Shown here piece after piece: positions 2,112 through 64,000 of a stretch of 64,000 bases of DNA. The notes under the pieces are model-generated. The model saw nothing but the letters and a program-made list of their open reading frames with translations, had not been told where the DNA came from and ran no database searches. Position numbers and translations under genes: made by a program. Numbering within the stretch: the stretch's first letter is position 1; every line of letters starts with the position of its first letter. The stretch is from Selaginella moellendorffii (lineage: Eukaryota; Plantae; Lycopodiophyta), in the NCBI RefSeq assembly GCF_000143415.4, contig NW_003314285.1, positions 1,561,471 through 1,625,470 on the forward strand, read 5' to 3'.

Positions 2112-4158
2112 TTACAAGCCCAATCTTCTCTTTCGTAGTCTCTCGGCGATGATGAAGGCCAGCTCCAGAGACTGCGAGGCGTTGAGCCGGGGGTCGCAGT
2201 GAGTGTGGTAGCGATCGGACAGGTTCTCCAGCAGCACAGATTTGCTCCCACCGATGCACTCGGTGACGTTCTGCCCGGTCATCTCCAGGTGCACGCCGCC
2301 GGGATGGCTTCCTTCCTGGTCGTGAACGTCGAAGAAAGCTTTCAGCTCGGCCTGGATGGACAAGAACAAAACGTTTTTAGTCCTCTGGAAACATTGCTTG
2401 GAGCTGCGATCCATGTCAAGAGACTTACCCGGATCGAGTCGAAAGGACGGGTTTTCAATCCGCTCGGAGTTTTGATGGTGTTCCCGTGCATGGGATCGCT
2501 CACCCAAGTCACGATCTGGCCGGCCGTGCGAACAGCGCGAATGAGGTGCGGAAGTTTCATCCTCAGCTTCTCGGCTCCCATGCGGACAACGACAGTCAGC
2601 CTGCCGGGCTTGTTTTGAGGATTCAGGATGTCGATGAGCTTGACCAGCTCGTTGGGGTCCATCTTGTCACTTACCTGCGAGTCAAAGAAGTCAGGTATTG
2701 GATATAAGGAAGAGATAGATAACGCGTACCTTGACACCAATGGGATTTGCTACTCCTCGGAGGAACTCAATGTGTGCTCCGTCGAGTTGTCGCGTGCGCT
2801 CTCCAATCCACAACATATGCGCCGAGCAGTCGTACCAGAGGCCGCTCGTCGAGTCCTGGCGAGTCAAGGCTTCCTCGTATGGTAGCAGTAAGCACTCGTG
2901 AGAGGTCCAAAACTCAGTCGACGTCATGATCGGGTGATCGATCGTAAGCCCGCAAGCTGACATGAATCCCAAAGCCTCGTCGACACGATTCGCAAGCTCC
3001 TTGTATCTGTTACATGCAGAAAGCACTCGTTCAACTTGTGCTGGAATTGACGAGAAAAAATCAAACAGGACGACTTTTAAAGTCTACGAAACGGCAAGAG
3101 ACTGCCGAGTGAGTCCAAGCTTCGCGACTGGACGTTCCAGCCACCTGCAACACGGATCTTCACTTTTTCGACCCCTCACAATAAATTTACAATCAAGCCA
3201 GACAAAAACAAAAGCCTGAGAACTGGAAATGACCACGAAAGCAAGCAAACGAGCACTCGACAAATCAACCACAGGTAAAAAGTCCAAAATGCACGCAAGG
3301 ATGTTTTCCCGTACCTTCCACCCTGTTCACTGTCGGAGGTGAAATCGAGGTTCCACTGAGTGACTCTTTGCATGGCGGCATAACCTCCCGTGGCAAAAGA
3401 TCGCAGCAAGTTGAGAGTAGCAGCAGCTTGGCAGTAGGCTCGAGTCATCCTCTCCGGATTGGGGGTCCTCGACTTCGTATCAAACGCGTCACCGTTGATG
3501 TTGTCTCCACGGTAGCATGGGAGCCGGATACCATCTTTCTCTTCAAAGTCGCTAGATCGCGGCTTTGCGAACTGGCCGGCCATTCTTCCCACCTGAAATG
3601 AAAGTCCTTTCAGAGATCTATCTTCCAGGAAGAGGAAACTCTGGAGCAACGTACCTTGATAACAGGCATTTGTCCACCAAACATAAGAACGGCTCCCATC
3701 TGGAGGATCACCCGGAAAGTATCCCTGATGTTGTTGGCATTGAATTCCTTGAAGCTCTCAGCGCAGTCACCGCCCTGGAGCAAGAACGCTCTTCCAAGAG
3801 CCGCCTCACCGAGCTTCTCCTCGAGGGACCTCGCCTCTCCAGCAAAGACCAGGGGTGGGAAATTCTCGAGCGTCTTGATCACCACCTCCAGCTCCTCCTG
3901 GCTGGGATAAGTCGGCAGCTGCAAGGCCTTCTTGGACTTCCAGCTATCCTTGCTCCACCCCTTGGGGATCGGGGCTGCCACCGTCGGCGCCTCGGTAATC
4001 GGCTCCACGGCGTGCACAGCCTGGATTTTCAATCCAGCTCGCCTAGATCTGCCGCCATAGCTGATGCCAGAGGACGATCCAACCAGGAGCTGCGTCTTCT
4101 TGTTCTCCAATTGCGGGAGAACGGCGGATGGGAGAACGGCCTTGGAGATAATCGCCAT
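2112..4158 (-). CDS. DHS: Class II DAHP synthase (phospho-2-dehydro-3-deoxyheptonate aldolase), plastid-targeted; exons 4158-3655, 3592-3315, 3006-2730, 2674-2429, 2351-2112
   Basis: Motifs [68 protein letters not shown] and CDPRLN join across GT-AG introns. The N-terminus is transit-peptide-like. A probable 5'UTR intron lies at ~4162-4279. Confidence 0.96.
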
Positions 4159-11068: not shown

Positions 11069-12063
11069 TTTCCTAAGAATGTGTTGCTAAATGCATTGTA
11101 GCTTTAGTTGAGAAAAGGTCTTCTCTTATCCAGCATGCTCCAAGCACGCGGAGCTACAGTTCGGAGGGTCAAACGGTCAACTCTGAAGGTTCAATTGTTT
11201 TCTTTTGTATGGGTTCTTTAGAAAGTGGTAACCACCAGCAAAGTTGACAGTCATTGCGCAAGCATGACAGAAGTGGGAATGAGTAAAATTTTGTACCAAT
11301 TAGACTTAATTGTCCTACCTCATTTCAAACAGAATCATAATTTTGAAAACATTTGCAAAACATATACTTGCTAACTATCTAATTGGTAATTATCACTTTC
11401 TAATTACTTTTTATTAATTTTAATAAATACAAAGTAATTCTTAAAAAATTTAAATACTGAATATACAGAGGGAGTGAGGAGTGAGGGTAGACATGTAAGA
11501 GAGGGAGGTGTTAGATTATGCATTTGTCCCCTCTCATGATCAATAATGAGAAAATCCTTTTCTGCAAAAATAAAATAATGATATGGACTGGTGAATTGAA
11601 ATTGTAGAATTACTTAGAATATAAATGAGATTAATATTGTGTTTATAAATTATACATACTTTTATTTTTAATAAATTTTTTTACATATTAATCATGGTTT
11701 TAATAGCATCGGAAAATTTCTCTAAGATAATAAATAATTGATAATTTGAAAGTGTATCATTTTATTTGCATGATAATATTTCAATAAAAATGTTTATTTT
11801 AATAAAAATTTGTTATGATGTTCTTTCTATAAAAAAAACGAGAACGTCACACCCTAAATGAAAGGGGGTGTTGAATTGTGCATTCTACCCGTTGAGTGTC
11901 GTGAACTCCCACAGCAGGTTTAACAAGTGCTACCTGGCTCTACGATCTGGATCAACTTGGTCGTTCAGGCAAAGGTAGCAGGCAGAGCTAAGCTAAAGAG
12001 GGGGCAAAAACATGAAATAAAATTGATCACTGAACCCTTGCAGCCGAAAAGATGACTTTTATG

Positions 12064-19647: not shown

Positions 19648-21411
19648 CTAGTTCGAAGCTACGAAGAGACTTGCCATCAAATCGTAGGCTGCTGTTGGTG
19701 CTCCTGAAGATGTTCTCTCCAGCCTCGTCAATTTCTCAAACGCCACCTTTCCCACCGCAACGTTCCCCCACTTTCGGCAGGCATCCAGTAGCATCGTCCA
19801 TGCCACAGAGTTCCCCTCCCAGGAGCGAGGCATCGCTTCCACCATAGCTTCCACTCCACCAGCACGTCCCAACAAGTCTGCCATGCAACTGTAATGTTGA
19901 ATCCCTGGCTCAATACCACCCCTTGCTACAGCCGCCTCCAAACACTGCTTCCCTTCGTCAACCAGGCCCGAGCGACTACACGCGGCTAGAACGCAGAGGA
20001 GAGCCACCGCATTTGGCCGACAAGAATCGTCCTGCATGGCCTGGAGAAACTCAAACACGAGGCGAGCGTCGCCATGGAGGCTGTAGCCAGCGAGCAGTGA
20101 TGTCCAAGTCACCGAATCTCTCGTTGGAACCGCATCAAAGACGAGCTGAGCATCGACTGTGCTGCCGCATTTGCCATAAACGTCGACCAGGCAGTTTCCC
20201 AGAAGCAAATCTCTCTCAAGCATTCCGGATCTTAAGATCCCAGCGTGGAGTCTCTTCACCGCTTCCAGGCAGCCACAGCCTGCTTTGAGCGCAGCAACGT
20301 AAGTTCGGCAGTTTGGAGTAAGTCCATGGTCGACCATCTGATAGAAAAGCTCCAGAGCTACGCCTGCTTCGCCATTCTCTACGAGTCCCATCTCAAGTGA
20401 AGTCCAAGGCACCACTAGATCGATGGCAGAGTTTCTGCCCCCGCCGCGGCCGCAAACTATTTCATTGAAAACTCGCCGAGAGTCTTCCATGCTTCCACAC
20501 TTGGCATACATGTCCACCATCGTGCCTGCCAGCAGAGCTTCCGAAGAGCAGCCGGACAAGCACGCTTGCGAGTGGAAGGCCATGCCTTTCTCTAAAGCCT
20601 TCACCTTGACAAGCTTACCGTTGTCTTGGAGCGGACCATCTTCTCTCTCGGCCAAGCCAATGCAAGCCTTGCAAACAGCCACGAAACTGAGATGGTTGAA
20701 ACTTCCAAAACCTTGGCCGTCTTCAATCCATCGGGTGATCGCCTCTAGAGCCTGCTCGAGCTCTCCATTCTCTACGTGCCCGAGAACCAAGGAGTTCCAG
20801 GACACCACGTCGCGCTCCTTCATGCTGTCGAAAACTCTGGCTGCATCCACCATGCTCCCACACTTGGCATAAAAGTTGACGAGCGAGTTTGCTACGAAAG
20901 TGTTGCTCAGCTCATCACCCAGCACTCTAGAGTGAATCGCCATTCCTTTCTCCAAAGAATCCGCCTTCACGAATTTTTCCCCGACCTGGACACCTCGTTC
21001 TTTCGCTGCCAGGCTCGAGCAGGCCTTGAGAAGAGCTACCAGAGTCCATGAATTCGGCGAGAAGCCATCGCGGATCATCTTGGAGAAGAGATCCAAGGCA
21101 AGAAACCCCTCCCCATTCTCAGCATAGCAAAGAATCATGGCTGTCCAGACCACTACATCCCTGTCCCTGTCCTGGATTCGATCGAAAACCCGTCGAGCCT
21201 CCATCGCGCTGCCGCATTTTCCATACATGTTGATCAAGCTACTCGCCACACGAGGATTGGAATCGTACCCTGTGTGGATCGCATCGGCGTGGATCCTCCT
21301 CCCTCTCTCCAAATCCCTGGCGCCGGTGCAAGATTTCAATGCCGCCACACTTGCCTTGATCGAGAATAGCTGCCGAGCGATGGCGCCATCGCCAAATCTC
21401 CTCGCCTCCAT
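19648..21411 (-). CDS. PLS-class PPR protein with E domain and elongated L-type motifs
   Basis: 587-aa ORF with repeated SLINMYGKCGS / VVWTAMILCY triplets, ending HYSCMADLLGRAG...WTMLLDACRKWG...AYDLMAS. Confidence 0.92.
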   Translation of the reverse strand: MEARRFGDGAIARQLFSIKASVAALKSCTGARDLERGRRIHADAIHTGYDSNPRVASSLINMYGKCGSAMEARRVFDRIQDRDRDVVVWTAMILCYAENGEGFLALDLFSKMIRDGFSPNSWTLVALLKACSSLAAKERGVQVGEKFVKADSLEKGMAIHSRVLGDELSNTFVANSLVNFYAKCGSMVDAARVFDSMKERDVVSWNSLVLGHVENGELEQALEAITRWIEDGQGFGSFNHLSFVAVCKACIGLAEREDGPLQDNGKLVKVKALEKGMAFHSQACLSGCSSEALLAGTMVDMYAKCGSMEDSRRVFNEIVCGRGGGRNSAIDLVVPWTSLEMGLVENGEAGVALELFYQMVDHGLTPNCRTYVAALKAGCGCLEAVKRLHAGILRSGMLERDLLLGNCLVDVYGKCGSTVDAQLVFDAVPTRDSVTWTSLLAGYSLHGDARLVFEFLQAMQDDSCRPNAVALLCVLAACSRSGLVDEGKQCLEAAVARGGIEPGIQHYSCMADLLGRAGGVEAMVEAMPRSWEGNSVAWTMLLDACRKWGNVAVGKVAFEKLTRLERTSSGAPTAAYDLMASLFVASN

Positions 21412-24976: not shown

Positions 24977-25653
24977 GTGCGGGTCGCGGATCCGACGGCC
25001 CATGTCTCGCCACCACGGCGCGGCATTACGGATCCGGGGCCTCGCGGCGGATCGGACGGCTGGCGTTGCCGAGGGCTCTTTGGGGCGGCTTTTAGCGATG
25101 GCCTATTTGTGCGTGTGTAGGTAGCTTAGAGTTCTTGCATTGGCGCACTGGCGCATTCTAGTAGCGGTAGATATAGCGGCATTGGAGGCTTCGATCGATC
25201 GATCGATTCACGGAGGCGCCGGTGCCGCGCTGCTCGAAATTCTTTGATCCGCGGCGTGTGGATCTGCATTGGCGCTAGGAATCGCCTAGGTCGCGCTCGC
25301 TGTGCTAGATCGACCCGGCTAATCGATATTTCGGGCGCTCAAGCTCGCTTGACGGCCACTCCAGCTCCAGCGGGGGATGACTGTGAGGCATTGCTTCACT
25401 ACCCTAGCAGCGCTGGAGGACGAGGAGGCGTCCTTCGTGAATGCAGGCGGCGGCACATCCCCTGCATTCTCTCGCTCGTTTATGGTACCAGATGTGCGTA
25501 GATCTGACACATTTCCAGTGAAGCCGGGCTTGATCGCGCTCCCCTGATTCGCAGCATTGCGATTTTCTTTCCAGCATTGGTTTGGGAAGCAACGCAGAGG
25601 ATCGTCTGAAATTTCGAGGTAAATTTCTATCAACCATCCACTGAATCGTGGAT

Positions 25654-28600
25654 ATGGCGCAGTGCTATGCGGAAAGCAAGCCCATCGGCACTTTCGACAT
25701 GCATGGCGGGAGGCTGTATTGCTCTGGCTATGGTGGCGACCATCTCAAGCCATTTAGAAGCTACTCCAAGTACGCGGCGGCATCGGCGGCTAACAGCGCG
25801 GAGATGATCGTGCCAATGTTTTTCAAGCAGCAGAAGCACAATCAAACCAGCCGAGCATCGCTTGAGACCGTTTCCACGAGCACCACTCTGGAGGCGGCGA
25901 ATCCTCCAGAGGCCGATCGCATCGCAGATGCCACTGTCAAGCTGGGATTGCCGAGCGACGAGATTCCAAAGCCACCTGTGATGAGGAAACTGTCTGGGGA
26001 GCTTACAGCGCCCACCAAGAAGGCCGATTCCAAGACCGAGATCGGGAGTTCCAGATCCGATGTAGACGGTGCGGTCGCAGCTCCCAAGCCATCCAGTAGA
26101 CACAGCTCGGGAGAAATCACTTCGGAAGTGGGAGAGGCTCCATCGACAAGCCAACCTTCGAAGCTAATTGGCGGTGTGGTGGCCAATGGCAGTGGAGGAA
26201 CTATTGGTGGTACGAGGACGAGGATTTCTAAAGCCGCAGCATCGTCTCACCAAAGCTGGCCTAGCAGCCCAGCTAACTTTCGACCGGCTCCAAGGACTCG
26301 CAATCTCAGCGAAGGAAGCTTTAGTATGATCTTCCCGGAGGAGGGACACAGCAGATTATATTTCACCAGTCCAACGAAAGCGAGATCGAAGGAACCAACC
26401 AAAGTGTCTGACGTTCAAGACAGCAAGGCCGGCTTCGCGACGAACTCTGCGTTTCCTGACAGGAAGCCGGATGGAGTTGTGAGAGTAACTCCAAAACGAG
26501 GAGAGTTGACGGAAGGTGGCGGCAAGGCAAGGAGTTATACCGGGAGTCCTCCTCGAACGCTGAACAAGGAGGTTCCATCCATTCGACATTCCAGAAACGT
26601 GAGTGATGGAAACTGGGGAGTGTTCAACAATGGCGCGAGGGGAGGCAACCTTTTCCGGTCAAACCTTTCAGCCTCTAAGCCTCAGGTTCCTGCTGCTGAG
26701 AAAGCTACGCCTCCATCGATCAAGCCAACCGGAGCAGCAGCAAAAGTTCAAAGTGAAGGGATGAATTGCGGGTTTGTTTCTGGCGGTAGCTTTGCCAGAG
26801 GCGGTGTCCCTGCCGGTGAGAAGACCTCCGTTGCGCAGGAGTCGACGATACCATCTTACGGCAGCGTAAGTAAAGGTGGTGCACTCGCTAGTAGCAACGA
26901 TCCTCAAAAACCGAACGGTAAAAAGGTCACGGCTGAGTCTTATGGAACTGGAAATGTGTTCCTCATGGGCGAAAGTATGTTGCTGAAGAAGGCTCTCACC
27001 AGCAAGGACGCAGAAGAAGTTAAGAACATCGGAAACGACCAGTATAAGAAAGGCCACTTCCTGGAGGCCTTGTCTCTGTACGATCGAGCGATATCTTTGT
27101 CACCTGGTCAAGCGCCTTACCACAGCAACAGAGCAGCCGTTTTGGCAGCACTGGGACGCTTGGTTGAGGCTGTACAGGAATGCCAACAAGCCATCGTCCT
27201 TGATCCAAGTTATTCTCGTGCACACTTGCGGCTAGGAACACTGTTTCTCAGGTACAGTCCCAGTTTTCCAACTCCTTGCTGCATCATCTTATGGTTGGTG
27301 TCTTGTTCCAGACTAGGATGGACAGACGAGGCGAAAAGGCATTTGCAAGGAAATGAAGGCGGAGACTTGCAGCGATTGGAAAGTATTGCTCTTCATCTAG
27401 CCAAGTGTCACGACGCGAGAAGGCTGAGAGATTGGCAAATGGTTATAAGAGAGAGTGATGCGGCTGTCGTTGCGGGTGCGGATTCCTCGGTCCAGGTACG
27501 TAGTTCCCGGTGTAAGTATGTTCTCAAGTTTTTTCTTCAAAATGCAGGCATACGCTCTCAAGGCAGAAGCTCTGCTAAACCTTTGTAAGGTGAACGAAGC
27601 TGATAGGGCCATTTTGTGCGCCCAGCGGAATTTGAAACAAAAGCATGTAGTGGACGAACGCGTGTACTTCATCGCTCAAGCGAAGATAGACCTGGCTCAA
27701 GGACGGTAATGTTTTAAATGCTTATGTCCAATACCTGATTCAAGTTACAGGTTTGAAGAAGCGCTTCAAGCAGCAGAGAAAGCTAGCGCAAACGAACCGT
27801 TCAATGCGGAAGTTTCTGGATTCGACAAGACAGTCCGTAGGTTAGTGAAGGCAAGAGCAACCGGCAATGACCTTTTCAAGGCTGGCAAATTCCTCGAGGC
27901 TTCAACCGCTTACGGCGAGGGATTGGAGCTCGATCCAGAAAATGCCATCCTATACTGCAACAGAGCAGCATGCAGGTCGAAGCTCCGGCTTTGGGAGAAG
28001 GCTATTGAGGACTGTAACGCTGCCCTCAACGTACAGCCCAGTTACACAAAGGCTCTTCTCCGACGTGCACAGTGTTACACCCAGGTACTTCAATCTCTAT
28101 TACTTGCTGATTGATAGGCCTGTCGTTTAATATGATGCAGCTTGAGCGATGGGACAGTGCACTCGAAGACTACATGGTTCTGAAAAGTAAGCTTCCTGGG
28201 GACGTGGAAGTTGCCAGGGCACTGTTCGAAGTGCAAATCGCTCAGAAGAAAGCAAGAGGAGAAGAAGTTTACAAAGTCAGTTTTGGAGGAGGTGGAGTCG
28301 AGGAGGTCTATAGCCCCGACCAATTCAAGGAAGCCATCACATCTCCAGGTATTACACAGCCAAGTGCTGCATGGCGGTGAGAAACCCACTCTAAGCTTGT
28401 GCTGTGCTTTCAGGTCTAGCTGTCGTTCATTTCATAACCAGATGGAGCGAGCGGTGCAAGCAGATTACGCCGTTTATCAATTTATTGTCAAAAAGATATC
28501 CTTCTGTCAACTTTGTCAAGGTAGCCGCTCCTTTTTTTTATGCTTTGCTTTTCTCAGCATCTAATTCGCTGCAGGTTGATATCGAGGACCACCCATTTCT

Positions 28601-32807: not shown

Positions 32808-33632
32808 ATGGCAATATTGATATTATTTGTTATTCTTCTAAGTTTTTATGAATGTCAAGCATATGTATCTAATAGATCTATTCAAGAATGTGTTATTAAT
32901 TCTACTCATCATAATATGCCTTCACCTCAAGACTACTCTAACTTCTTAAACATTACCTATAGCTATATAATTTTAAGAAATAATATAGAAAATAAAATAT
33001 ATAAATTTTCCTATAATAACATAAATTTTACACTTACATTAAGCTTAAAAATTGTAAGCTTTGAAGAAAAACAACATGATTTTGAGCAAGCTCTAAAATT
33101 TATTTTCAGTACCTGTTTTATAAAAAGGAAAAACAAAGTTGGCTATGTCATATTATATGATGGAAGTTTTGCAATTACGGTTCAAATTACAGATTTACAT
33201 ATATCTAAAAACGAAAGTATATCTCTATTAAAAAGAAAATATTATTATAATTCTAATTGTTATTTAGAAGTCAATTCTATAAGTAATCCTTCAACACTTT
33301 ATACAGATCAATTTTTAATTTCTCCAAATGGTAAAGTTGTTTTTATTCTTGAATCACATTGCAACCTTGTTTTGTACTTTGAAAGAAATAAAATTTGGGA
33401 ATCAAGTACAACACAATATGGTTATAATTGTATGTTGAAATTTCAAAAAAATGGTAATCTTATTTTAAATCTAATAGAGAAAACAGTATGGGAAATTAAT
33501 CAATTTTGTAAATTCCTTGGTTGCACTTTATTTTTTACTATTCAAAATGATTGTAATGTAGTTATATACTCTGAAAAACGTCCTAACAATGTTTGGTGGG
33601 CATTAGGTAGTGATAAGTTATGTTCTCATTGA
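32808..33632 (+). CDS. Secreted protein with an unassigned N-terminal domain and a C-terminal bulb-type (B-type/GNA-related) lectin domain
   Basis: Signal peptide MAILILFVILLSFYECQA. The C-terminus has three beta-prism subdomains: LESHCNLVLY..W, FQKNGNLIL..VW and IQNDCNVVIY..W (the third is an intact QxDxNxVxY). Intronless and very AT-rich. Confidence 0.8.
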   Translation: MAILILFVILLSFYECQAYVSNRSIQECVINSTHHNMPSPQDYSNFLNITYSYIILRNNIENKIYKFSYNNINFTLTLSLKIVSFEEKQHDFEQALKFIFSTCFIKRKNKVGYVILYDGSFAITVQITDLHISKNESISLLKRKYYYNSNCYLEVNSISNPSTLYTDQFLISPNGKVVFILESHCNLVLYFERNKIWESSTTQYGYNCMLKFQKNGNLILNLIEKTVWEINQFCKFLGCTLFFTIQNDCNVVIYSEKRPNNVWWALGSDKLCSH

Positions 33633-35746: not shown

Positions 35747-36078
35747 ATGATCCCTTTCTCGCTCTGGTACTCACTTTGCTGCCACTCCTCTGCCCGCTTG
35801 GCCATGGAAAGATGTGCACCAACACTGGGGTTTCACACACCTTGCGGGCTCAGCTCCTCGTCGCATTCAATTCCGGCCTGGAGCTCACGTCCACCGCCAG
35901 CAGCTGGAACACCACCACCGCCACAGGTTCGCTAGAATTTTCCAGGAGGAGAGTCCTCCAGCAGCAGCAAAACAATTCCTTTCTTGGGGCTGTTTCACTG
36001 CACGACGTGAGGCTTTTGCCGGACTCGTGGCAGGCAACTGCGCAGCAAACCAATCTCGACTACTTGCTCATGCTCGAT
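35747..36078 (+). pseudogene. 5' fragment of a plant GH127/DUF1680-like (beta-L-arabinofuranosidase-like) gene
   Basis: Signal-like FLALVLTLLPLLC, then KMCTN..SHTLR...SFLGAVSLHDVRLLPDSWQATAQQTNLDYLLMLD, which matches the recalled N-terminus of plant GH127-family proteins. The ATG is out of frame and similarity stops abruptly at ~36078. Confidence 0.7.
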
Positions 36079-36348
36079 TATATCATTCATTTGTATTTTG
36101 CTAACTTATTACAAATGTAACAATTTAAGATATGCAGTATGCCTACTCTTGTTTTAGAGTGACAAACCACAAAATTGACGTGTCAAGTATAGAGGAAATC
36201 TATAATTATTGAGCAAAATAATTCTTTTTGGAAGTATTAGTAATTATTGTCAGATTTATAGTATTTAAAGATAGAATTGTACTTAACATTACATTAATTA
36301 TATTGAGATTACTAACCTAGTTATATATTGTTACTATATTTATTATTC

Positions 36349-36754
36349 ATGGGTTTTAATACCTGGTTCTATCTTTTATTGTTATTTGATCTATTTCAGT
36401 GTAAGTATAATAGTTTGAACTTAATCCTTAATTCATGGCTTTCTTTATACAGCAAAAATCATTGAAGGAAAAGATAAATTTAATTGGGCTCCAGATATGA
36501 AAGATGCTCTTGCAAATTGTAATGTTTATCAAGAAAATGTTATTTTATGGAGAAAAGGTAACGAATTTGTTTATTTTGATTATGATACCCTAGCAGCAGA
36601 AACGTGCTCTAAAATAATAAATAATGTACAATTTGATGGTGTATCATTTATTGGTAATGGTCATTTTAAAACTAAAGGTTGGTATGGATGGCAAAACTGG
36701 GCATTTAGTGGTCATTATTCACATGATAGTCATGATGAAGTAATATTTCAATAG
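36349..36754 (+). CDS. Small putatively secreted protein (117 aa), YvgO-like; exons 36349-36400 and 36453-36754
   Basis: ATG exon MGFNTWFYLLLLFDLFQ, then a 52-nt GTAAGT...TACAG intron that restores frame with the 36497 ORF. The C-terminus is GHFKTKGWYGWQNWAFSGHY...EVIF. Confidence 0.7.
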
Positions 36755-37499
36755 ATAAGAAGCTAATATAAGCATTATATGAAATTTATTTTATTAATTA
36801 AAATGTTGTAGGAATGTTATGAATAAAACATTTTAAAGTTTAAAAAAAAATGGTATAGATGATTTGAAACAGTTAAAACTTGTATTCAAGTTTGATAAAG
36901 TCATAGTTAAGAACATCAGGTAACTATAGAAAACATCTAATACTGAATGAGACCAAAAGATATATAAAGATATACATTAAAAACTAAATATGTTTTTGTG
37001 CATTTTTGTTTTTTTCTATTTGTAATTTTATCAGTAACAAAATTTTACATATAATAATTTTTAAAATAAATTTATATAAGACTTATATGAATAATAGTAA
37101 TATCTTGTTTAGTATAATAACCACATTCAAACTCTTAAAACTTGCCCTCAATTTTAGTTTTATGCCTATGGTTGGATCAATCAATCCTTTTCTCTTTCTT
37201 AAAGGAGCTCATCAGGCAATTGGTGTTGTTTTCAATCTAGAAAAATATAGACTTTTGGAATTTACCATAATACTGCAGCAATTGATTTGTGTTGTGTGAA
37301 ATGCCAATACTGTATTTGTATAATTTTATATATAACTCACTTTTATTTAACTTTTACTGAATAGTTTTTATGGCCATATTGTTACCTCCAATCTCAAATC
37401 TAAACCAGGGTTGGTAGAAGTCTTGGCATTAAGATGTTGATGCTCTAACACTATTATAATGTTACTTCATGCTCATGTCCTTTTATTCCTTGTACTGTA

Positions 37500-40059
37500 T
37501 GTTTGAAAGTCACTCTATGTTTCAATTCCTTTACTTTTTAGTTACATACTCATGAGTTTAGTTTTGTCCTTTTGTTCAATGGCCCAAGATCCTGAAACTT
37601 AAATTCCACTTTGCTACCTTTCACCTATGTGTTCAAGGGTTTAAATTCCATTTCATGGTTATCTTGTGTTAAATCATTATAAGGTAAAAGGTGAAAATTA
37701 TTTAGTATCAGATAATATGTCCTAACAAGTATTATCCAATAAGATTGTTATGACACCAATGAAACAAACAGGAGAGTGAACCCTAGGCCAACCTCTCAAC
37801 CCTTAAGGCGTTACGGCCTTAAATCCCACAAGCCATGAAATATTCTTGAAATATTCCCATGGTTCGTGTCATTCTCCCCTCCCTCATGACCCAGCCATAT
37901 ACAGCAGCCTCGAGAAGCTAAACGAGCCTCACATGAAGGGAGTCCAAAGCAATATGTGGGCAACTAATCTTATTTTATATGTAAAAATGAAAACAAAAAT
38001 TTGATGTTTAGTTGCTATATCTTTATATATATCTCTTAGGTATGGATTTTGGTTACTTTGTCGTACTATATTAAATGAGTTTTCACTTGGGCTTGTAAAA
38101 TGGATTTTTTATACACCATTTGTATGAGTTTGTGCTTGGGCTCATAAGTGAGATGCATTAGTAAATTAAAGTTACATTTTGAATTGGTATAATTAATGTT
38201 AACCTATTGGTGGTTATCATGAGTTGTTCCATATTACTATGGGTAAAAATAAACCTCTCTAGGTTTGTTATAAGTGGTAAATAGGCTGGCACTAGTGGAT
38301 CTTACCTAAGCATGATTATAAGTAGATCAATCAAGACTATAGAGATTAGTCTATTAGTTCAAGTAATCAATGTCCTGCTCTCTCAAAAATTTTTTTGAAT
38401 TGAACTAAACGTAGTATGAATGCAAGCTAGAAGTTTAGTCAAAGTTGAGTCTGAAGAGAGAGTCATTAAAAACAAAGGATTAAACATGTAAATCATCTTT
38501 TCTTTTTGGGAAGTTTCTGAGACAATCACAAAAATTTATTAAATATGAAATTGCACTAAATTGCATATTTAGACACAGGTTTGCAACAAGAGATCTCATT
38601 ACTTATGCTCACATCATGATATTGAGACTTCCTATTTCAATACATATTGGTTATGATAGCTTTACAAATGGTGAGTCATAGAATAAATAATGGTGAAGCA
38701 TTAAATCATTTTGTCTAAGCTTGTTATTGGAAATCTTGAATTATAATGCTTAATTCTTTCCAAGGATCCTTATTATTTCTCCTTAAGTAGTTTGATGTTG
38801 GATTAATTTTGAGTTCGGTTGGAAAGAGAATGGTATGAATTTGTGGTAGTGTTGGTGGTGTTAAGTGTCATAAATCTCTATTGGTGGGATGGTATTTATG
38901 TTGCATTTTGTCAAATAGAGTTAACACTTAATACTCATGTAAATCTTTGTAATAGTAATATATATTTTGTTTGTGGTATTGCTCGATTGATAATCAAATA
39001 ATTGTAACTATTATATCATGATCATAAGGACTGTATTTATAAAGTTACTTGGTCAAACTATAATCAACCCCAAAATAGTTGATGGTGAAATTAATCTACT
39101 TGCAAGTAGTAACATCGTAGTAGCTTTGACAAGGTCTTAAAGATGATCCATTATTCTAAGCTAGTGTTGGTATGCTAGTTAGTTGTTAAGCATAACTTTA
39201 TTGTGTTTAGTTTTTGAATTAATATAAATATGATTTTCATTAGCTTTACATTATAAAATTTAACTTATGGATGTGTTGATGAGGATATTATAGGTTGTAT
39301 TATGATTTTTTTTTGTATTAAAGTTAGTTCATGCAAGATTTATAATTATTATTATACGAGACTTGGCTATAAGCTTCTTCAAACTTTTGTTCTTTGAGTT
39401 TTTATATTCATTATTTTATTTATTAAAAGTTGTTAAAGAAAATATTTTGGCTTATTAGCTTTGATGTTCAAATTAGCTTCCACATTTAACAATTATTAGT
39501 AATATCATTTATAACAATTAATTATCTTTGTTAAAATATTGTTAATTATTATTGATATTGGATGCTTTGCCATTCTTTAGGATGGTAGAATTTTCTTTAA
39601 TAATGATTATGCACCTTTCTTAATAGGGTGATTGACGATTTTTGTGATGGTTAATTGTTATTTTGAGGGTTTTTGGCTTTTTACATTACTATGTAATTTT
39701 TGTTTGTGGTTTATTTTGGTTTGGTCTCTTGAGTTTGAATTATCGATAGGATATTATTGATGCTTTCTTGAGCAACTCTGATTCCTTTGTATTGTTAATT
39801 AAAATTTATTTAGACTAATTGATCTTTTCCTATGACTGTAACACATGTGATTATAGGATGAAATTTGGATATTTTATCATCAGGAATCTTTGGAACTTTA
39901 GGGGATAAATGGGGATAAAATAGTCACTAAAGGCTTTCTCATCAAGCATTCATTTTCTAATTTAACTTTATTCATTTAGTGATTTTTGGGTTTGGGCTAG
40001 TATAAGTAAATTTGTTTTAGCACATTATATACATGATGAAATCTCTAGTTATAGGGTAG
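37500..40059 (+). mobile_element. Old, heavily degraded copy (A) of the local LTR retrotransposon family
   Basis: LTR-end remnant and degenerate PBS (tttagtatcaga, ~37700). Internal blocks are collinear with 43.5-48 kb but carry many C>T/G>A changes and deletions. Confidence 0.7.
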
Positions 40060-42324
40060 TGTTGTGCATGTGACTTCGGGTATCGAAAGTTATCTGTCGA
40101 CTAGTCCTTACGGACACTCTTACCTTACTGCCACGATGGCAGGAGCTCGGTATTGCTAGACCCTTTATTAGTCCCTCTTGTTCAAATGTTAGTAAACTGG
40201 ACTTTGCATCTGTACTTGGCCGGATGAGTATAAGGAAGGAATTCCTAAGTGTCTATTTAGCTGAACATACTCGGCCCGGCTTGTTAGTTCTCTTTTGCTC
40301 TGTCTTGCATTGGCTTGACAAGAACCCTCGCATATTGAGATTAGTCCCTCAATATCGCTACATGATAGCTTACCGTGTCTGCCAAACACCCTCGCTATCA
40401 TGCCCTTTGTGTTAGTCTTATTTCGATCCTAAATGCTATTTATGGAAAGTGTCCAGATTTGCTCATTTGGCATACGCCATGCTTGTCCTTGTTCTGCGTC
40501 CGGCTTGGTTCTAAGCCCAAGTTCCATTCCATGCTAGCTGGTGGAGTACCCATGTCCTCACGTTATGCCATCGGTATGCCGAAATAGTGCCAGACTCCGT
40601 TTGGCTCCGTTTTGCGTGCTAGTCCTGGCATTGGGATGCTGGTTGCTCCAGGACTGTTCCAAGTCGCTTCAGGCTCCTGTCCCTTTGCTCTTTGGGCTGT
40701 ATGCTCAAGAGTTGCTCCATGGTTTGGTTTCGTCACTCCTTGGCTCCATGCTTGGGAGTTTGGCACCGTTCTTTCATTCAGTGGCCCAAGGCCTTGAACC
40801 TTGGGTTCCACACCACATTCCTTTGGACACACGGCATGTGACATGTGGCATCTGTCATGTGGCACAAAGAGGGTTTAGGTTCCACTTCGTGGTGTTATTC
40901 TATGGTAAATCACCATAGGATAAAGGGTAAAAACCACGTGTGCTACATTTAGTATCAGAGCATGAGTCTCAGCATGAGATTGGGCAACTAGTCTCGTTGC
41001 ATATGCAGAGATGAAAATGATGATCCGAGTGGGTACACGTTTTGGTGCAAAGGCTTTGCAATCGTTCCTTAGGTATGGATTTGGTTACCTTTTTTGTACC
41101 GTAATAATGTGAGCTTGCTCTTGGGCTCATAAGATGGATTGAGATGTTCCATTACATGAGTTTTCGCTTGGGCTCATGAGTGAGGCACATTAGCAACTCA
41201 AGGTTACACTTTGAGTTAGCAGGATTAATGTAAGCCTATCGATGGTTCCAGTGGTTCCGTAAGTTGTTCCTTGTACCATGGGAGAAGTAAACCTTCCCTG
41301 GGTTTGCTGTGAGTGACAAATAGGCTGGTCCGTAGCTGTTTAGCATGGCACTAGTGGATCCTTCTTAGGCATGATTACAAGTGGATCAATAAAGACTATA
41401 GGGATTAGTCTATTGGTTTAAGTAGTTATTGTTGTGCTCTCTCATAAACTTTTCTTGGATTGGACTAAAGGCAGTGCGAAAGCAAGCTTGAGGTTTAGTC
41501 AAAGATGAGACCGAAAAGAGAGTCGTCAAGGACGAAGGATCAAACACGTAAATCATTTTCTCTTTTTGGAGAGATAGTTTGCAACGAGGTGTGACTCATT
41601 GCTCATGTTCACATTATGCAATCAAGAGTCCTTACCTTGATGCATATTGGAAATGATGGTCTTACAAATGGTAAGTTGTGGGATGGATAGCGGTGAAGCA
41701 TTATACCATTTTGTCTAAGTTTGCTATTGGAAGATTTGAGTTACAATGCTCAATTCTTTTCCGGGGAACCTTGCTATTGCTCCTTGAGTAGCTTGGTGTT
41801 GGATTAGTGTTGAGTTTTTTCGGAAAGAGAGTGGCATGAGCTTGACCGTGTTGTGAACAAAAGTTAGTGGTGTTGTTGTAAATCTCTATCAGTGGAGTGT
41901 GGCATTTGTGTTGCATTTTGTTGAATCAAGTTAACACTTGATACTCACATAAACTTTTGAAATAATGATATAGGCATTGCTCATGGTGTTACTCAATTGA
42001 TGACCAAGTCATTATGGTTCTCATATCATGTCCATGTGATAGTGAGCAATGTGTTTACGAAGTTGCTTGGGTAAATGATGATCAACCCCAAAGTGGTTGA
42101 TAGTGAAGCTAGTCTACTTGCATAAAGTAGCATTGTAGTAGCTTTGACTGGATTCTCAATAGTGGTCCATTATCCTAAGCTTAAGTTGGTTCCTTGTTCC
42201 TTGAGGGTTTGCACATAAGGTGTTAGAAAAAGGGTTGTAGCATTCATTTGCTATAACTCATCAGTTGATCTATTAGCACTTGGAGTAGATTGTTGAATGG
42301 AGAAGGTGTGTAATTGAGGCATTG
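40060..42324 (+). mobile_element. LTR retrotransposon copy B: 5' LTR 40060-40946 (internally deleted), PBS and start of the internal region
   Basis: TG...CA LTR homologous to the LTR at 54469, PBS tagtatcagagc, and internal sequence homologous to 43.5-44.86 kb. It is interrupted by element C. Confidence 0.8.
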
Positions 42325-62893: not shown

Positions 62894-64000
62894 CTAAAAC
62901 TCCACGTTTTGACCAATTAAATTTGCAAGCAAAGGATAAGCTTGAGGAGCTTCACCCCCAGGACAAAGGTCGAACACATTCTTTGCTGCATTAGTTCCAA
63001 ATGTAACATGGCTGTGACTCTTGCAAGCTCCAAGAAAACACGTCCACTCTAAATATCCGGCTCATATTAGCAATTAAATCCTCTGCATTAACCAAATAGC
63101 TAGCACGTCCCAAAAGATCAACAATACAACAAAAGTGCTGCTGGTTGGGTCTGACATTAAAGTCAGCTTGCATCGACAAAAACCAGTAGTGACCTGTGTG
63201 GGTTTTTCCAACATGGCTACAAGCGAGAAGAGCAGATAAAAAACATATGTCATTGGGTATAGACATGAGTTTCATGGCATCAAAAAGATCAATAGCCTCT
63301 TTAGAGTGACCATTATGGGCATATGCAGACAACATTGCACTCCACACTAAATCTTGCTCTGGGGCTCTCTCAAATAGCAACTTACAGTATAAAAGGTGCC
63401 CGTTTTGGGCATGTGCTGAAAGAAAGGCGCTCCATGCAACAAAGTCCTTCTTTGGCATTTGGTAGAACACACTAGTAGCCTCCTGAATAAAGCCATTTTG
63501 TGAAAAACCAGAGAGAAGAGCAGTCCAGGAAAATAGGTCCCTTTGTGGCATTCTATCAAACATGAATTTGGCAAGCTCTAGATTCCGGTTTTGGGCATAT
63601 CCAGAAAGCATAGTGTTACAAGAAATAAGATCCTCCTCCGGCATCGTCTCAAACATATCCTTCGGTTTTTCCATAAGGCCATAGTGTGTGTATGCAGCCA
63701 AAACAATATTCCAAGTATAAAAGCTATGCTGAGGCATGTTATTATACAATGAATTTACGGAATCAAGATCACGGCTTGCAATAGCCGTTGAAAGCATTGC
63801 ATTCCAAGAGACAAAGTTACGCTCTGGCATCTTCTCAAACATTCTCTTTGTTTTCTCATAAGAGTCGTTTTGAGAAGAGGCTGTCAGCCGGGCATTGAAG
63901 GCAACCAAATCCCATACGGGCATGGCCTTAAAAGTCAGCTCAGCCTTTTCAAAATGCCGGTCAATTGAATATGCGGTCAGCACCGAAGTCCAAGAAACTA
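62894..64000 (-). pseudogene. Near-identical duplicate of PPR 33683-35482 with a frameshifted E domain; 5' part lies beyond the window
   Basis: The repeats are almost identical in protein sequence. 7-bp and 1-bp deletions at ~63050-63064 shift the frame after DLIANM and stop at 62991. Confidence 0.85.

Follow-up and report, generated by a model that had tools for sequence, protein, structure and literature searches.

Does a short segment of very AT-rich DNA in the genome of the lycophyte Selaginella moellendorffii encode a complete protein, and if so, to what family does it belong and how did it come to be there? Within the window, by which we mean the whole 64,000-nucleotide stretch of DNA analyzed, the ORF list for this locus shows an 85-aa stub alone, starting at M36497. 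An initial annotation had proposed instead a hidden two-exon gene for a small secreted protein resembling Bacillus YvgO, acquired by horizontal transfer.

The first in-frame ATG of the forward-strand ORF at 36328-36465 lies at 36349-36351, and from this point the following gene structure is read from the sequence.

36349..36400, + strand: exon 1, 17 codons plus 1 nt, ending in phase 1
36401..36452, + strand: intron, 52 nt, phase 1, GT-AG, 27% GC
36453..36754, + strand: exon 2, the mature YvgO-like domain, with 99 full codons from 36455 and the stop codon TAG at 36752-36754

The intron begins with the donor GTAAGT and ends with a pyrimidine-rich CAG acceptor (GTAAGT...TTTCTTTATACAG). When the two exons were joined by script we obtained 117 codons with no internal stop, and the proposed two-exon structure was thereby reproduced exactly, both in its coordinates and in its open frame. 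The splice was joined in scripts alone, and all the searches described below used the exon-2 product (36455-36751, + strand) as the query. If left unspliced, the frame of exon 1 runs into a TGA at 36463-65, and the frame of exon 2 has a TAA upstream at 36422-24, with its earliest in-frame ATG at 36497. The stub that begins at this ATG cannot be the whole gene, because the tryptophan encoded at 36485-87, which is kept in every full-length plant relative, precedes it. At the other end of the protein, the C-terminus of the exon-2 product lines up with the ends of all the relatives. The minus strand under the gene carries short ORFs only.

Exon 1 encodes a 17-residue hydrophobic leader, MGFNTWFYLLLLFDLFQ, with the core WFYLLLLF, and Kyte-Doolittle means over nine residues peak at 2.2 at residues 7-8. 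The leader of the 117-aa product looks like a signal peptide, though an atypical one, as its n-region is without a basic residue and an aspartate lies near the end of the hydrophobic core. A hydrophobic N-terminal leader is present in all the full-length plant relatives too, and the annotated S. moellendorffii paralog described below has a matching leader exon and phase-1 intron, which speaks further for the two-exon model. The collections searched, which include the S. moellendorffii proteins of NCBI, hold no protein on record for the locus, and an Rfam search of the window from 30 to 42 kb gave no match. Read from its sequence, the locus is an intact but unannotated two-exon gene for a small protein of predicted secretion type.

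Could the open frame and its motif be a coincidence of AT-rich DNA? The initial annotation had argued that the frame stays open where stops are frequent, and that argument turns out to be weak on its own. When the 4-kb AT-rich island was shuffled 1000 times, 61 of the shuffles contained an open run of 109 codons or more, corresponding to p ~0.06. Searches of Pfam, NCBIfam and the PDB sequences with the exon-2 product gave no match, and nor did a word-index search in which it was used as a single sequence. The Pfam blank means little, because the same copy of Pfam also missed genuine Bacillus and Streptomyces YvgO ORFs. It is homology, and not the length of the ORF, that marks the locus as coding. 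An exhaustive phmmer search of the exon-2 product against 1.84 billion representative proteins returned exactly two matches. These were the 111-aa S. moellendorffii protein XP_024534696.1 (42% identity, E 2.6e-15) and a protein of the fern Ceratopteris richardii (E 1.1e-4). Two Adiantum proteins and one fern-like environmental contig were picked up in addition by a profile search. With an HMM built from the plant relatives without the window sequence, the exon-2 ORF scored 74.8 bits, and the other 356 ORFs of the window scored 3.1 bits or less. A confident fold model with a specific match to YvgO, described below, adds to this. A chance ORF is thus ruled out by the phmmer homology, the plant-only HMM score and the YvgO fold match, and we give coincidence practically no credence. 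No seed-plant relative was found in the phmmer or profile searches, in keeping with the suggestion that the family is not one known from seed plants.

The seven plant sequences align collinearly, with 19 invariant columns that include F-x-T-x-G-W-Y-G-x-x-N-W. Both the motif of the group, F-x-T-x-G-W-Y-G-(W/Y)-x-N-W-x-x-x-G, and the collinear domain of ~95 residues are present in the window protein, where the motif lies close to the C-terminus.

36665..36712, + strand: family signature F-K-T-K-G-W-Y-G-W-Q-N-W-A-F-S-G, identified in the alignments, the counterpart of bacterial F-T-N-x-G-D-G-G-W-I-N-W-A-F-x-G

Among the plant sequences G75, W76, Y77, G78, N81, W82 and G86 are invariant, and five of these (G75, G78, N81, W82 and G86) stay invariant when the bacteria are included. 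By alignment, the window protein is a member of an unnamed lycophyte and fern clade characterized by GWYG.

The closest relatives are encoded by LOC112347667 and LOC112351200 (XP_024534696.1 and XP_024544383.1), both 111 aa and named only as 'uncharacterized protein' in S. moellendorffii. XP_024534696.1 is a paralog and not an ortholog, because it and the window protein share one genome. In these genes, too, a phase-1 mini-intron follows the leader and divides the gene into two exons, and their products have the GWYG motif and the same two cysteines. In one haplotype (L077, scaffold GL377588.1) exon 1 occupies 3001-3061, followed by a GT-AG phase-1 intron of 43 nt at 3062-3104 and exon 2 extending to 3379; in the other (L080, scaffold GL377623.1, 1001-1380) the intron is 44 nt. 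They differ from the window gene in being only 40-42% identical, in the length of the intron (43-44 against 52 nt) and in a leader-to-domain region that is shorter by 5 residues. Relative to the paralog, the splice junction of the window gene is shifted by five residues, within a stretch whose length varies. The annotated paralog sits among ordinary genes, encoding an LRR kinase, bVLRF1 and DNA polymerase alpha.

The fern proteins (C. richardii KAH7404831-34, Adiantum nelumboides L7F22_006840 and A. capillus-veneris GOP47_0001366) have the same domain with F-F-Q-T-M-G-W-Y-G-W-E-N-W-A-F, and are 32-35% identical to the window protein. They too have N-terminal leaders, but a pro-region of 40-60 residues separates leader and domain, longer than in the window protein, and the paired cysteines are absent. 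The gene range in A. nelumboides equals the length of the CDS and the gene is therefore intronless, so that not every member of the clade has the layout of leader exon and phase-1 intron. The gene range in Ceratopteris is 1.9 kb. The environmental contig, of 1939 bp from JGI metagenome 3300047535, carries a fern-like family member (L078, 300-821). Upstream its frame continues without a stop through the conserved W-N-W, with no methionine there, which suggests that an upstream leader exon may be present there as well.

The resemblance to YvgO had been proposed in the initial annotation. To assemble a bacterial set, bacterial genomes were scanned for the back-translated motif GGWINWAF and the ORFs then extracted. 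The scan gave 76 loci, in Bacillus, Streptomyces, other actinomycetes, cyanobacteria and Paenibacillus. Each group can be detected from the other. An HMM built from the bacterial sequences alone finds all seven plant proteins at 21-36 bits, and the plant-only HMM matches all 31 bacterial representatives. Among 357 ORFs of the window, the bacterial-only HMM scores the exon-2 ORF at 21.4 bits (E 4e-6), with the next best at E 6.6. When the plant and bacterial alignments were compared using hhalign, a probability of 96.5% and E of 7.7e-10 were obtained over the C-terminal 41 columns. In a MAFFT alignment the two groups are collinear over the whole domain, with 17-27% identity between the bacterial sequences and the window protein. 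A search with the combined profile gave 350 matches, of which the best 120 are all bacterial, and the relatives that it finds bear the name 'stress response protein YvgO [Bacillus subtilis]' together with PF25411.3. In the precomputed annotations this family is present on the bacterial matches and on none of four plant relatives (P0001, P0002, P0007 and P0008).

The Bacillus YvgO proteins (PF25411 / DUF7888, for example the 161-aa B. subtilis protein P0012) are likewise small, with a collinear mature domain of ~95 residues, and have an N-terminal secretion leader where the window protein has its putative one. They share with the window protein the blocks N-V-M-V, G-V-x-F and the C-terminal G-x-F-x-x-x-G-x-x-G-W-x-N-W-A-F-x-G-x-F...V-x-F. 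The differences are that YvgO has a long linker between leader and domain that the window protein does not, and that the window protein has in addition two cysteines specific to lycophytes and is the product of a eukaryotic gene with a spliceosomal intron. Where the strict bacterial signature is G-D-G-G-W-I-N-W-A-F-x-G, the window protein reads G-W-Y-G-W-Q-N-W-A-F-S-G. Eight of the eleven defined positions are kept, with D, G and I replaced by W, Y and Q. The substitution of GWYG for GDGG had been noticed at the outset, and it proves to be a property of the group, since GWYG is invariant in all seven plant sequences. Because the GDGG-W-I signature is absent, we classify the protein as belonging to a divergent branch of the YvgO family rather than as a typical member.

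An AlphaFold2 model of the exon-2 product (pLDDT 77.7, pTM 0.69) comprises one helix followed by eight strands. Its best match in the ESM Atlas is the cluster 'Stress response protein YvgO', with a TM score of 0.68 over 86 of 99 residues and an rmsd of 2.4, in a comparison where both sides are predicted structures. The next row of the ranking falls to 0.43, and PF25411 is present in 83% of the members of the YvgO cluster. Foldseek against the PDB and a wide VIA-align search with the model gave no convincing solved relative; the best Z score to a solved structure was 4.5, to monooxygenase effector proteins, and is within noise. The ESM Atlas model of the paralog (pLDDT 0.42) is too poor for use. 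The hhalign result, the reciprocal HMMs and the best fold match in the Atlas all agree with the proposed resemblance. Taking alignments and models together, we see in this small plant family a eukaryotic branch of bacterial YvgO / DUF7888 that has diverged deeply, and that is remotely homologous to YvgO across the mature domain in sequence profile and in predicted fold.

There may also be fungal relatives. The three nearest language-model clusters in the ESM Atlas, all of them fungal, are the same for the window protein (0.88) as for B. subtilis YvgO (0.89). These clusters near DUF7888 are a 'G9234 protein' cluster from Ascomycota and two from Basidiomycota, one of them bearing DUF7888. The likeness of these clusters to the window protein serves as a lead only, as the scores lie below 0.9 and the clusters are neighbors by language model.

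We turn now to the origin of the gene. A tree was calculated under LG+C20 from seven plant and 31 bacterial sequences over 105 columns; it is unrooted and holds no fungal sequences, and the bacteria in it were chosen by motif or profile. The plants form one clade with support of 100/99, within which the window gene and its Selaginella paralog group together (95/79), as do the ferns (85/79). The branch between the plants and all the sampled bacteria totals ~6 changes per site, and the terminal branch of the window gene is 1.27 changes per site. For the horizontal origin proposed at the outset the tree offers little, as it presents one old plant clade on a very long branch from the bacteria, with no donor. 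It fits a single old origin before the split of lycophytes and ferns, which may have been followed by loss or undetectable divergence in seed plants.

The base composition of the gene might be thought a foreign signature, and it has to be seen in its surroundings.

36061..40040, no strand: AT-rich island holding the gene, ~25-30% GC, between the PPR gene region and GC-normal DNA

The CDS has a GC content of 29%, with GC1/GC2/GC3 of 41/30/16%, and the intron and flanks of the gene are 25-27% GC. The annotated paralog has a GC3 of 59%. A repeat of ~300 nt is present at 38105-38394 and again at 41090-41453, 76% identical at a spacing of 3.0 kb, and what sets the island copy apart from the GC-richer one is mainly G>A (20) and C>T (17), with 42 changes from GC to AT against 15 from AT to GC. 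The AT-rich islands thus look like products of local cytosine deamination. Because the flanks are equally AT-rich, the paralog has a far higher GC3 and the repeat exhibits G>A and C>T changes, we ascribe the composition of the gene to local mutational drift. We reject AT-richness as a sign of foreign DNA, since the gene matches its island, its own intron, its flanks and the C-to-T decay. No convincing terminal repeats were found around the gene when a transposable element carrying it was sought.

These observations bear on how the family reached the plants. A recent insertion of microbial DNA, or contamination of the assembly by foreign DNA, might account for a gene of 29% GC in a window whose PPR genes are 44-52% GC, and for remote relatives that are bacterial and fungal. 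Against this, the flanks and intron are equally AT-rich, the spliceosomal intron is common to the gene and its paralog, and the gene groups with Selaginella and fern genes very far from all the sampled bacteria. Moreover an allelic contig of ~98.7% identity exists, and plant PPR genes flank the locus on a 2-Mb scaffold of S. moellendorffii. A recent insertion or contaminant is nearly refuted, and we regard it as very improbable indeed. If the gene were instead an old vertical one, present in early eukaryotes or streptophytes and lost many times without any transfer, we should expect a monophyletic plant clade that mirrors the split between the species and nests in no sampled bacterial group, as is seen, and fungal clusters bearing DUF7888 do exist. 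However, among plants the family is found in lycophytes and ferns only, so that many independent losses would be needed, and the bacterial family spans Bacillota, Actinomycetota and Cyanobacteriota. We think purely vertical descent improbable. A foreign origin remains plausible, in the form of an ancient event. Most likely the vascular-plant lineage would have acquired the family from a microbe a single time, far in the past, and the family would then have been duplicated in Selaginella, with copies now in blocks that are decaying toward AT.

Is the gene alive? An intact but unexpressed duplicate might be decaying slowly in a methylated, AT-drifting, TE-rich block, with the GC-normal annotated paralog alone doing the work of the family. 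None of three RNA-seq runs labeled with the same species yielded a read on the locus, although with ~12% of each run sampled this is no valid test of expression, and standard RNA samples often miss the expression of defense genes. The only public contig over the locus (from run X1, whose contigs total ~3 Mb) is 639 nt, covers 36213-36848 and ends 21 nt past an AATAAA at 36822-27. It is colinear with the genome and retains the intron, and may be DNA or an unspliced transcript. There are 8 differences between this contig and the window, of which 4 lie in the CDS, 2 synonymous and 2 nonsynonymous. The two haplotype alleles of the paralog have 7 differences in the CDS, 6 nonsynonymous and 1 synonymous, and these small counts point to fast or relaxed evolution of that protein. 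Pooling the recent differences gives 3 synonymous and 8 nonsynonymous, as neutrality predicts. The pooled counts argue against strong purifying selection in recent time (binomial p ~0.03), and do not distinguish relaxed from diversifying selection.

A silent relic would also agree with the lack of a recorded protein, the low GC3 compared to that of the annotated paralog, the C-to-T decay of the island, the even ratio of allelic differences and the decayed fragment of a further copy at 11.70 kb. But the ORF, both splice sites and all the family-invariant residues are intact despite the long terminal branch. Eleven codons offer 17 single-transition routes to a stop codon, and in an island prone to transitions none has been taken. 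Furthermore GC1 > GC2 > GC3 is, as judged from composition, the pattern of a sequence kept as coding. We therefore consider silence of the gene doubtful, but a reading to be taken seriously. As a whole, the explanation that we favor, and hold with moderate confidence, is that this is an intact unannotated paralog in a lycophyte and fern family that forms a branch of YvgO / DUF7888, encoding a putative secreted antimicrobial or stress protein.

What might the protein do? In B. subtilis yvgO is a gene of the SigB regulon (PMC7824861). Bacillus YvgO is secreted and has been purified as an antifungal protein; the antifungal activity is reported for the B. thuringiensis protein only, and its mode of action is listed as not available (PMC8703302, PMC9755354). 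In Selaginella the leader would route a protein of ~100 residues, built of one helix and a beta-sheet, to the secretory pathway and from there to the apoplast, where by analogy with Bacillus YvgO it is predicted to act against microbes or as a stress protein. On this analogy, we think it most likely that the plant protein is a secreted apoplastic antimicrobial or stress protein, whose invariant aromatic loop GWYGW-x-NW would probably bind a ligand or surface.

A literature search found no paper on DUF7888, and none that links YvgO to plants. If the gene is expressed and active, it would extend into plants, as a branch that bears an intron, a bacterial family of antifungal proteins that has no solved structure. 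A further candidate would also be gained for an ancient transfer from microbe to plant that has survived only in seed-free vascular plants. The locus also indicates that the annotation of S. moellendorffii misses small genes of very low GC3 in AT-rich islands. It is conceivable, though we think it rather unlikely, that a YvgO-type gene passed from a bacterium or a fungus into early vascular plants, where its binding loop was rebuilt from GDGG to GWYG, and that it was kept in lycophytes and ferns only. The expanded set in Selaginella would then be fast-evolving apoplastic antifungals missed by annotation, and housed in AT-rich islands with genes of secreted defense type, such as the ORF for a GNA-type lectin described next.

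A second AT-rich island of the window contains an intact 274-aa ORF on the + strand (32808-33632), with 24% GC and a GC3 of 14.5%. It encodes a hydrophobic leader and a C-terminal mannose-binding lectin domain of the bulb type (GNA). Among PDB entries it comes closest to gastrodianin-4 (E 5e-14) and to the antifungal protein GAFP-1 (E 1e-12). The protein collection searched does not contain this exact sequence, and the ORF is probably unannotated. This is a second gene of secreted defense type, 2.7 kb upstream of the YvgO-like gene. Two further features of the neighborhood are as follows.

11704..11762, + strand: probable decayed fragment of a further YvgO-like copy, in another AT-rich island
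19651-21411, - strand: PPR ORF, 587 aa, identical in every residue to a protein of the public collection in whose 90% cluster all named members are S. moellendorffii XP_ proteins

The fragment is 59 nt and 81% identical to 36591-36649 (blastn within the window, E 3.8e-10), with 52% identity over 31 residues by tblastn; the wider alignment fades beyond ~80 nt. Finally, positions 1-35500 and 62991-63983 of the window hold a dense cluster of intronless PPR genes with at least 7 long ORFs, all but one of 526-668 aa, and an ORF for a TPR protein lies within the region of this cluster at 25648-27588.
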